A stretch of DNA of 64,000 nucleotides from Sminthopsis crassicaudata (lineage: Eukaryota), in NCBI RefSeq assembly GCF_048593235.1, contig NC_133617.1:16497607-16561606 (forward strand), written 5' to 3'. The stretch's first letter is position 1. Each line of letters opens with the position of its first letter. This document shows, piece by piece, positions 15,901-18,900 of this stretch. A program made the position numbers and the translations under genes. The notes beneath the pieces were generated by a model. That model saw only the letters and a program-made list of their open reading frames with translations, was not told the origin of the DNA and ran no database searches.

Positions 15901-18900
15901 ATTTATTTGTTTGTTTGTTTTTGCTGAGTTGCCCAGGGTCACACAGCTAGGAAGTGTTAAGTGTCTGAGACCAGATTTGAACTCAGGTCCTCCTGACTTC
16001 AAGACTGGTGCTCTATCCACTGCATCAGCTAGATGCCCCAAGAATATATTTTAATACTCAATGAAAATATTGTTTTTTAATTATTTCATGTATCTAAGTT
16101 TTCTCTTCCCAACAGAAGTTTAAGATCCTTGAACAAAAGGATTCCAAGATACACTGATGCTCCAAAACTCACCCTAGTATTAGGCATTCAGTAGTTGAAC
16201 TCAACTGAAGTACCAAATTTTAAGTGATTCATCACTGTCTTAAGATTTCTCAATTCTAATAACAATTAAAGCAGGCCTCTGAACACATTGTGATATTGGT
16301 GCCATGAATTTTCAATTAAATAATGAGCATGATTCCAGTATAGATATAAGGGTATCCCTTATTGGGTGACTATTTTTGGTGGCAAAACTTTTACTTCTCA
16401 CAGTGTTGCTGTTGATGTTTTAGATGATTTAAAAAAAAAAAAAAACAATGTGTTAGAACAAAAATTGTAAATGAGTCAGGATTAAAATGTAAAAAAATAC
16501 TGAAGTCAGGAAAGACTGCCTATAGGTTACATTGATTCCCACAATCCTTCACAGGGCAAGTGAGATGGAGATCAAAAACAATAATAAAAAGAGAAGGGGG
16601 GTTCCTAGTTTATATCCATGAGTTTTCTTATTTGAATAGACAAATGGAGAATAATATAGGAAATTAGAAAATATATAACTGTCTCCATCACTTATATCTT
16701 AAAAACAAAATACTCCCAAACCGTCTTCCATAGGATTCTCAGATCATTGATGAATAATATATTTCCTAAACCATAAAATATATCCTAAAATTATATAACT
16801 TCAAATGTTTTCTTTTGTACATTTTCCAAAGAACTTTCACAACCATTCTTTTATATGGGTCTGACAACAACACTGTGAGATAGGTTTGGCAGGTATTATC
16901 CCCATGCTTTTTACAGATGAGAAAAATTGAAGTTCAGAGGTTATAAAACTAAGCCCAAGGCATCACAGTGTATCCATACTGAAATAATGTGATGTTCGTT
17001 TTAATAAAATAAGCCTCATTTTCCAGTCAATAGATTTGGAGTCTTAATGGTTTGAAAGGAAACCCATAATTTGATCTCAAAAAAAGAAAACTTTGAAGCA
17101 TGCACAAATATGCTATGTATTGAATTTTGCCCTCAATGAACTGTTAAGAATGATTTTTCATACAACTTTTGTAATGATAAAAATCCAAACAGAATGAATC
17201 CTTTCAAAAGTAGTATTGAAATATTGCAAAAAGTAAAAGAAAAAATCTATAATTCTTTAAAATCTCTTTCAAACTTCCTAACATAAAACATGCTTAGCAT
17301 CCTTAACAATTCACAGCATTGTTACTAATACAACTCTGCCACAGACAAACAAATGACAGTTCACTGCACTCAAAGGCACAATGCACTCTGCCCATTACAT
17401 AACAACAATACAGCTAACAAGTCACAGCAAAAAACCAAATACAACAACAACAAACAACCTCCTGTTGCCTTCACTGATATTCTCACCTCTACCCCTTCCA
17501 TGGCAGGCTGAACCAAAACAAAAATTACAGCATGAAAAAATGCAACAAAAAAGTAAAAGAAAAAGAAAAAAGAAAAGTAGATACTATTCTTCAGATTGCA
17601 AAGTCATAAACTGACTTAATAGGTTATTTTCTCACCTCAAACTGACAGAATGGAGACAACGAACATCTCCCGCACTCTGAAATGCTCTCCTGAGGATGGG
17701 GAGGAAAATCATCTTTTTTTTTTTTCTACTTATGTTATTTACACATAACTTCCCACACACTCGTGCACAATAAGAACTAATGAGTGAACAAGACAATGAA
17801 AAGACAATATTCAAATAGCACTTGAGACAGAGGAATAGCCAGACATAGAACAGAACAAACCTCTATCCCTTATAGATCAAACTACATAGATCTTTTATGA
17901 GAAAGTACCCATCCCCAACCAAAATGAAGAATAGGGATTTGAGAAGTTATAAGAAACTATATAAACAAATCTGTTGCATGCATTTTGGCAAAGAGAATTG
18001 TTTTATTTAGCATTAACATAAACAGGTTCAAGTTTTAAATAGTTTTCCCACCAGAAGGAGAAACACTTCAGTCATATGAGGTAAAGTAAATTCAGTCCTC
18101 ATTCACTGGGTATCTTTTAGGGTTTACACACTGAGGAGAACCCTCAACAGTGACTAATTGATATATTGAGAAAATGATCACATTTCCCCCAAAATATGAC
18201 TACATACAGTAAATGGTGCAATAAAATAATGGATTAGTATGTGTTATCATGTACTAAATTATTAAGAAATAAAAAGAAATTGCAATCAATTATTAAAAAT
18301 TGGAATAGATAACAACAAAGTTTAATAACCTCTCCTTCACATTAATAACCAAATAACCAAGAAGATTCAGATAGGTTTTCTATCTTTGTAATTTAAAAAA
18401 AAAAAATGAAACTACAATTAATTTTTTGATAAAGCAAAGATCGCCTGGGTTCTGTATAAGCATAAGCAAGCTATATATTAACCATTTCATAATCCCAACA
18501 ATTCCAACAGCTGCATAACACACATAACAAAAAGTCAGTGCTTAGATTCAAATGCAGCATAAACCCTAGATTGGATAAAGAGGGTAGCCTTCTTAAACAA
18601 AGGCTATATAGCTATTAGATTCCAATGAAAAAAAAACCATCATCTTTTCACTTCAGATTCTCTGAATTTATTAGCTGAGTTACTATATCTCCTCTGAAGC
18701 TGCCTATGCACTTTGGATATTACTTATTACTAAATTACTAATAAAAAAAAAAGTACTTCTTTTGGAGCACTGCTCACCTCTGAATTCAAGTACATTTCCT
18801 TGAAAAAAAGAAAGAAGAATTTACTAAAAGACTGAGGGATTTTATCCTTTGGGGAAGACTCATTCTGAAAGTTATATAAAACATCTCTCATGGATTTGCC

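Follow-up and report, generated by a model that had tools for sequence, protein, structure and literature searches.

EMYLNSE, a candidate 21-nt microexon in the cassette-bearing intron of dunnart TRRAP, is probably a chance-born pseudo-microexon

The window, a 64,000-nt stretch of the Sminthopsis crassicaudata (dunnart) genome (NCBI RefSeq assembly GCF_048593235.1, contig NC_133617.1, positions 16,497,607 to 16,561,606 of the forward strand), carries on its minus strand a long series of exons of TRRAP, which were located by a local tblastn search guided by a fish TRRAP. TRRAP serves the SAGA and TIP60/NuA4 acetyltransferase complexes as their large scaffold. The intron of interest, 4,735 nt long, separates two constitutive exons (noted as exons 31 and 33) and holds two known alternative cassettes of 54 nt and 21 nt together with a second, candidate 21-nt cassette. 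Alignment of exon 30, at 23201-23031 of the minus strand, to the solved human TRRAP chains places that exon at residues 1412-1468 of the 3830/3859-residue chains, and the insertion point of the alternative peptides after residue ~1491, in the Tra1-ring region. The features of the intron, with a slash marking each splice boundary and conservation given relative to the orthologous intron of a non-marsupial tetrapod (loci L003 and L004), are as follows:

20110..20178, minus strand: constitutive exon ending ...GGQRSDGN (noted as exon 31), donor gtaagt
19179..19229, minus strand: conserved 54-nt intronic island (~80% identity to L003/L004), located 380 nt upstream of the candidate, which it does not include
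18799..18821, minus strand: candidate acceptor, an uninterrupted 18-nt pyrimidine tract (18819-18802) followed by cAAG, with the AG at 18800-18799
18778..18798, minus strand: candidate 21-nt cassette GAAATGTACTTGAATTCAGAG, translated EMYLNSE, phase 0/0, no stop
18772..18777, minus strand: candidate donor, GAG/gtgagc
17338..17762, minus strand: conserved block of ~430 nt, 78% identity to L003/L004, enclosing both known cassettes
17636..17689, minus strand: known 54-nt cassette ESISEC..., 18 residues, cctcag/.../gtgaga
17487..17507, minus strand: known 21-nt neuronal microexon PAMEGVE, ggttcag/.../gtgaga
15255..15374, minus strand: constitutive exon starting EMKICS (noted as exon 33), ttattag/GAAATGAAG

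The preliminary description of this DNA had proposed EMYLNSE as a microexon made up of a pyrimidine tract, 21 nt of coding sequence and a gtgagc donor, and this anatomy is indeed found at 18798-18778 of the minus strand, ~1.3 kb below the SDGN exon, where the sequence reads 5' to 3' a-ttcttctttctttttttc-aag / GAAATGTACTTGAATTCAGAG / gtgagc. The claimed phase 0/0 and stop-free translation were also borne out, as was the fit between the SDGN exon (ending at 20110) and the EMKICS exon (starting at 15374), and the ESISEC and PAMEGVE inserts, which had been assigned to this site, lie inside the candidate's own intron (17689-17636 and 17507-17487, respectively). Two resemblances that had been pointed out are likewise present in the letters: the candidate begins GAAATG like the EMKICS exon, and it ends GAG/GTGAG like both known cassettes. 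Because the neighbouring exon boundaries fall between codons, inclusion of the candidate would preserve the reading frame, and because all boundaries in the intron do so, any combination of the three inserts would remain in frame. An AG acceptor with its pyrimidine tract, a GT donor, a kept frame and the absence of a stop, as expected of a cassette microexon, are thus all present. A second in-frame donor (AAAGAA/gtactt) lies a little further on and would define a 42-nt, 14-residue version of the candidate (18757-18798, minus strand), which stands at rank 18 in the scoring of splice-site pairs described below.

The two known cassettes correspond to documented splicing events. Porter et al. (Cell Rep 2025, PMC11864812) count TRRAP as one of 14 chromatin regulators whose neuron-specific splicing is conserved. 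For human and mouse they describe two TRRAP events specific to neurons, which match the 21-nt and 54-nt cassettes; of their human primers, that for isoform 1 lies within the PAMEGVE 21-mer and that for isoform 2 within the 54-nt exon. No third event is named in the literature found on TRRAP with microexons, opossum or alternative splicing.

The whole orthologous intron is covered in L003 (Logan SRR32210698) and L004 (Logan SRR33291897), whose exons have 82-84% DNA identity to those of the window. These loci read SDGN, VVVLTHKGG and PAVEGVE, which rules out both a marsupial and the human sequence represented by the published primers. A further locus, L001 (Logan ERR1697187), aligns to the window at its exons only (~84%), may be of human or primate origin and was left out, and L007 ends before the intron and contributes nothing to the comparison. 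Window and L003/L004 align at the flanking exons, at a small island, at the cassette block and over ~150 nt before the EMKICS exon (15375-15518, minus strand). Within the block, L003 is identical to the window over the 23 nt that precede either known acceptor, L004 being one base off before PAVEGVE, and the peptide of the 54-nt cassette is identical in both. Intronic conservation of the kind found around the known cassettes is typical of regulated exons. The island has its counterparts at 6806-6859 of L003 and 3418-3471 of L004, contains two conserved UGCUUUG motifs, is found in both lineages ~900 nt downstream of the SDGN exon and, in the dunnart, is without splice sites resembling those of an exon; it might act on the cassettes as a splicing-regulatory element.

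The candidate itself falls in the unalignable part of the intron, with no alignment to L003/L004. When the segment between the anchors was forced into alignment with MAFFT, the sequence opposite the candidate showed no pyrimidine tract, AG or GT, and identity was 39% locally compared with 47% for the inter-anchor segment as a whole. Scanned for in-frame mini-exons, the L003/L004 intron yielded both known cassettes and some weak, unrelated matches, and nothing like the candidate. The preliminary description had looked to related species for conservation of the exon and its splice sites; such conservation is absent both in this non-marsupial tetrapod and in fish, and the candidate appears to sit in neutrally evolving intron.

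In the three fish-type loci (L002, L008 and L009), PALEGVE is the only cassette of this intron. The fish TRRAP P0014, recovered as a match to exon 30, carries PAMEGVE, and a full-length search with it gave at least 120 TRRAP isoforms among the matches listed, all from fish. About 90 junctions were readable among these listed fish isoforms: 50 have no insert, ~40 have PA[MLV]EG[VL]E and three are evident mispredictions, and no EMYLNSE-like insert occurs in any of them. As PA[MLV]EGVE, the 21-nt cassette occurs in fish and tetrapod loci as well as in the fish isoforms. The three fish introns and the listed fish isoforms lack the 54-nt ESISEC cassette, which is present in L003/L004, dunnart and human and so looks like a later, tetrapod-level addition.

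A search of representative sequences with exon 30 returned mostly prokaryote-style ORFs that read exon 30 into the following intron in various vertebrates, plus one fish TRRAP, P0014; the exact look-up of the window's own exon-30 ORF found nothing on record. No spliced marsupial TRRAP fragment came from the searches with the exon-30 ORF or with a cervid retrocopy fragment, and none of the fragments found matches the window past exon 30. In the other vertebrate fragments the exon-30 acceptor is CAG (Q before FLEGAT). The retrocopy is an observation in its own right: deer genomes (Cervus, Dama, Rangifer) contain a processed TRRAP fragment of several joined exons extending to the middle of exon 30 (P0035, P0043, P0243, P0247), which in Dama dama is annotated inside an ERV-K Env-like model.

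How unusual the candidate's splice signals are was assessed within the window. Donors of the form xAG/GTRAG occur seven times on the sense strand, six of them being TRRAP exon donors (49074, 43067, 40212, 27802, 17636 and 17487) and the seventh that of the candidate. A dinucleotide model predicts 6.3 per strand, and the antisense strand has nine; the single non-exon donor on the sense strand compares with ~6 expected, a shortage that might be due to selection acting on sense introns to keep out strong decoy donors. AG sites preceded by at least 18 pyrimidines in 20 nt number only 23, and the candidate is the one place on either strand of the window where such an acceptor is followed by an xAG/GTRAG donor 9-60 nt away. 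Arithmetic from these counts and the dinucleotide expectation gives a chance rate of ~0.02 in-frame, stop-free pairs per window, though the true rate must be above this figure since the thresholds were fixed after the candidate had been seen; a many-window or genome-wide scan will meet some such coincidences.

Position matrices built from the splice sites of 31 mapped TRRAP exons rank the candidate AG..GT pair 9th of 10,436 short pairs, with the 54-nt cassette 1st and PAMEGVE 13th, and most of the pairs that outrank the candidate reuse a real exon boundary. The two sites of the pair differ in strength. The acceptor scores at the 77th percentile of the 31 real TRRAP acceptors; among the 33 acceptors as strong as this one, 11 are mapped real sites and several more belong to unmapped exons, so that about a third to half of acceptors this strong are real. 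The donor reaches the 19th percentile of the 31 real donors under a matrix dominated by GTAAG, with 446 non-exon GT sites of the sense strand doing no worse. The AAG before the candidate is no bar to its use, since AAG rather than YAG acceptors serve two consecutive constitutive TRRAP exons on the minus strand, starting at 23785 (ccttaag/ATG) and 23201 (cttaaag/TTT). Rarity and ranking together make the candidate unusual and compatible with a real exon, and its splice signals appear good enough for a genuine cassette.

Upstream UGC is a mark of SRRM4-dependent neuronal microexons, and an exon of 21 nt usually depends on such help. No UGC motif lies within 100 nt upstream of the candidate, as against three for PAMEGVE; neither this feature of SRRM4/eMIC-dependent microexons nor the other, deep conservation of exon and flanks, is found at the candidate. 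The same 100 nt contain five UCUU motifs. No Rbfox GCAUG occurs within 700 nt, the nearest being at 17981, and the local RNA fold around the candidate is unremarkable (z = 0.33). An origin of the candidate as a copy of the EMKICS exon start or of another cassette was considered and found no support, local alignments being no better than shuffles except in T-tracts; 13 of 21 bases match the EMKICS exon start, which 0.1% of the 21-mers in the window do equally well. The surrounding 1.2 kb (19400-18201) has a single 32-nt match elsewhere in the window, with no repeat copy there to indicate a mobile-element origin, one window being too small a sample for judging repeats.

Set beside known systems, the candidate shares with the PAMEGVE microexon its intron, its length of 21 nt, phase 0/0, the GAG/GTGAG donor and an acidic peptide ending in E, but PAMEGVE is conserved with its flanks from fish to mammals and has UGC upstream, and the candidate has neither. 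With the 54-nt cassette it shares the intron, phase 0/0, the GAG/GTGAG donor and a strong pyrimidine tract, whereas that cassette is conserved across dunnart, the L003/L004 tetrapod and human, uses a CAG acceptor and has the length that ordinary exon definition requires. Intronic pseudo-exons resemble the candidate in their unconserved position and in that an exon is suggested by signals alone, although the candidate is much shorter than is typical of them and surpasses most decoys of the window in signal strength. Lineage-specific exonisation, in which exons are born from T-rich tracts, offers a further likeness (a T-rich acceptor, AT-rich intron and a single lineage), and differs in that elsewhere in the window no other copy of the 1.2 kb around the candidate was found.

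On balance we consider the candidate to be a chance-born pseudo-microexon, unused or used at trace level, with a probability of roughly 0.6. A T-rich tract with an AG at its end and a GAG/GTGAG donor would have come to lie 21 nt apart and in frame by chance, where the TRRAP intron, home also to both genuine cassettes, evolves freely; the result looks splice-competent and might be included at trace level. This reading is drawn from the lack of conservation relative to L003/L004 and from PA[MLV]EG[VL]E being, a few mispredictions aside, the one insert in the fish loci and readable fish isoforms, from a literature that names two events and the absence of upstream UGC at the candidate, from a donor at the 19th percentile with 446 non-exon GT sites as good, and from the absence of any sign of a duplication origin or of special RNA structure. 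It is opposed by the rare signals, by an acceptor of a strength that is real in about a third to half of cases, by a pair scoring above PAMEGVE that is in frame and stop-free, and by the position of the candidate in the only intron here that is known to carry cassettes. As far as genomic comparison can tell, the candidate stands outside the conserved splicing programme of TRRAP, and we infer non-use or marginal use at most.

A genuine young cassette microexon, limited to marsupials or dasyurids, is possible but in our view doubtful. It would add EMYLNSE after ...SDGN, alone or with the 54-nt and 21-nt cassettes, it would be recognised through its very strong pyrimidine tract and its U1-complementary donor, and PTBP-type repression through the UCUU-rich tract might give it tissue specificity. 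The rare, strong and correctly spaced signals, the frame without a stop, the GAG/GTGAG donor common to the candidate and two real cassettes, the five UCUU motifs, the use of AAG acceptors elsewhere in TRRAP and the location in a known splicing hot-spot intron are all in keeping with such an exon. They have to be weighed against the lack of conservation outside marsupials, the missing UGC enhancer motifs and the neutral evolution of the surrounding intron, and also against the general behaviour of lineage-specific new exons, most of which have low inclusion and often no function.

That the pair serves instead as a decoy or stepping stone, binding U2AF/U2 and U1 without ever being kept in mRNA and thereby affecting how the 4.7-kb intron is removed or which downstream cassettes are chosen, seems very improbable: strong sites 1.1 kb upstream of two regulated cassettes would suit such a role, but known decoy exons are conserved and the candidate is not, and the intron is short enough to make stepwise removal unnecessary. 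An ancient third vertebrate or amniote TRRAP cassette, missed by annotation, is ruled out or nearly so, since for all that its donor resembles those of both old cassettes and its GAAATG start recurs in the next exon, it is absent from the L003/L004 intron, where both old cassettes are nearly identical to those of the dunnart, as well as from the fish loci and listed fish isoforms, and the human and mouse surveys give two events. The candidate, if real, would consequently be a marsupial or narrower novelty.

We think it rather unlikely that dasyurid or other marsupials evolved EMYLNSE as a third in-frame cassette at the TRRAP loop that takes the 7- and 18-residue neuronal inserts. Were this the case, a core subunit of SAGA and TIP60 would possess a lineage-specific combinatorial peptide switch, with a further cassette at an already known site of alternative splicing. 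Even if confined to one lineage, a third insert would mark the loop as a preferred site for evolving tissue-specific variants and would amount to a natural experiment on what TRRAP inserts do. If the candidate is the pseudo-microexon that we favour, it illustrates that strong signals, the right frame and a suggestive location are insufficient to call a microexon. Either way the real cassettes become clearer, the 21-nt exon being traced from fish to marsupial and the 54-nt exon among tetrapods, both in a highly conserved intronic block.

Two minor features were seen elsewhere in the window. A run of 163 N at 50143-50305 is an assembly gap or masked sequence. The third-ranked pair in the splice-site scoring is a 46-nt, frame-shifting intronic AG..GT pair at 43663-43708 of the minus strand, just upstream of the exon starting near 43600-43640; the pair may represent a poison exon or a further decoy.
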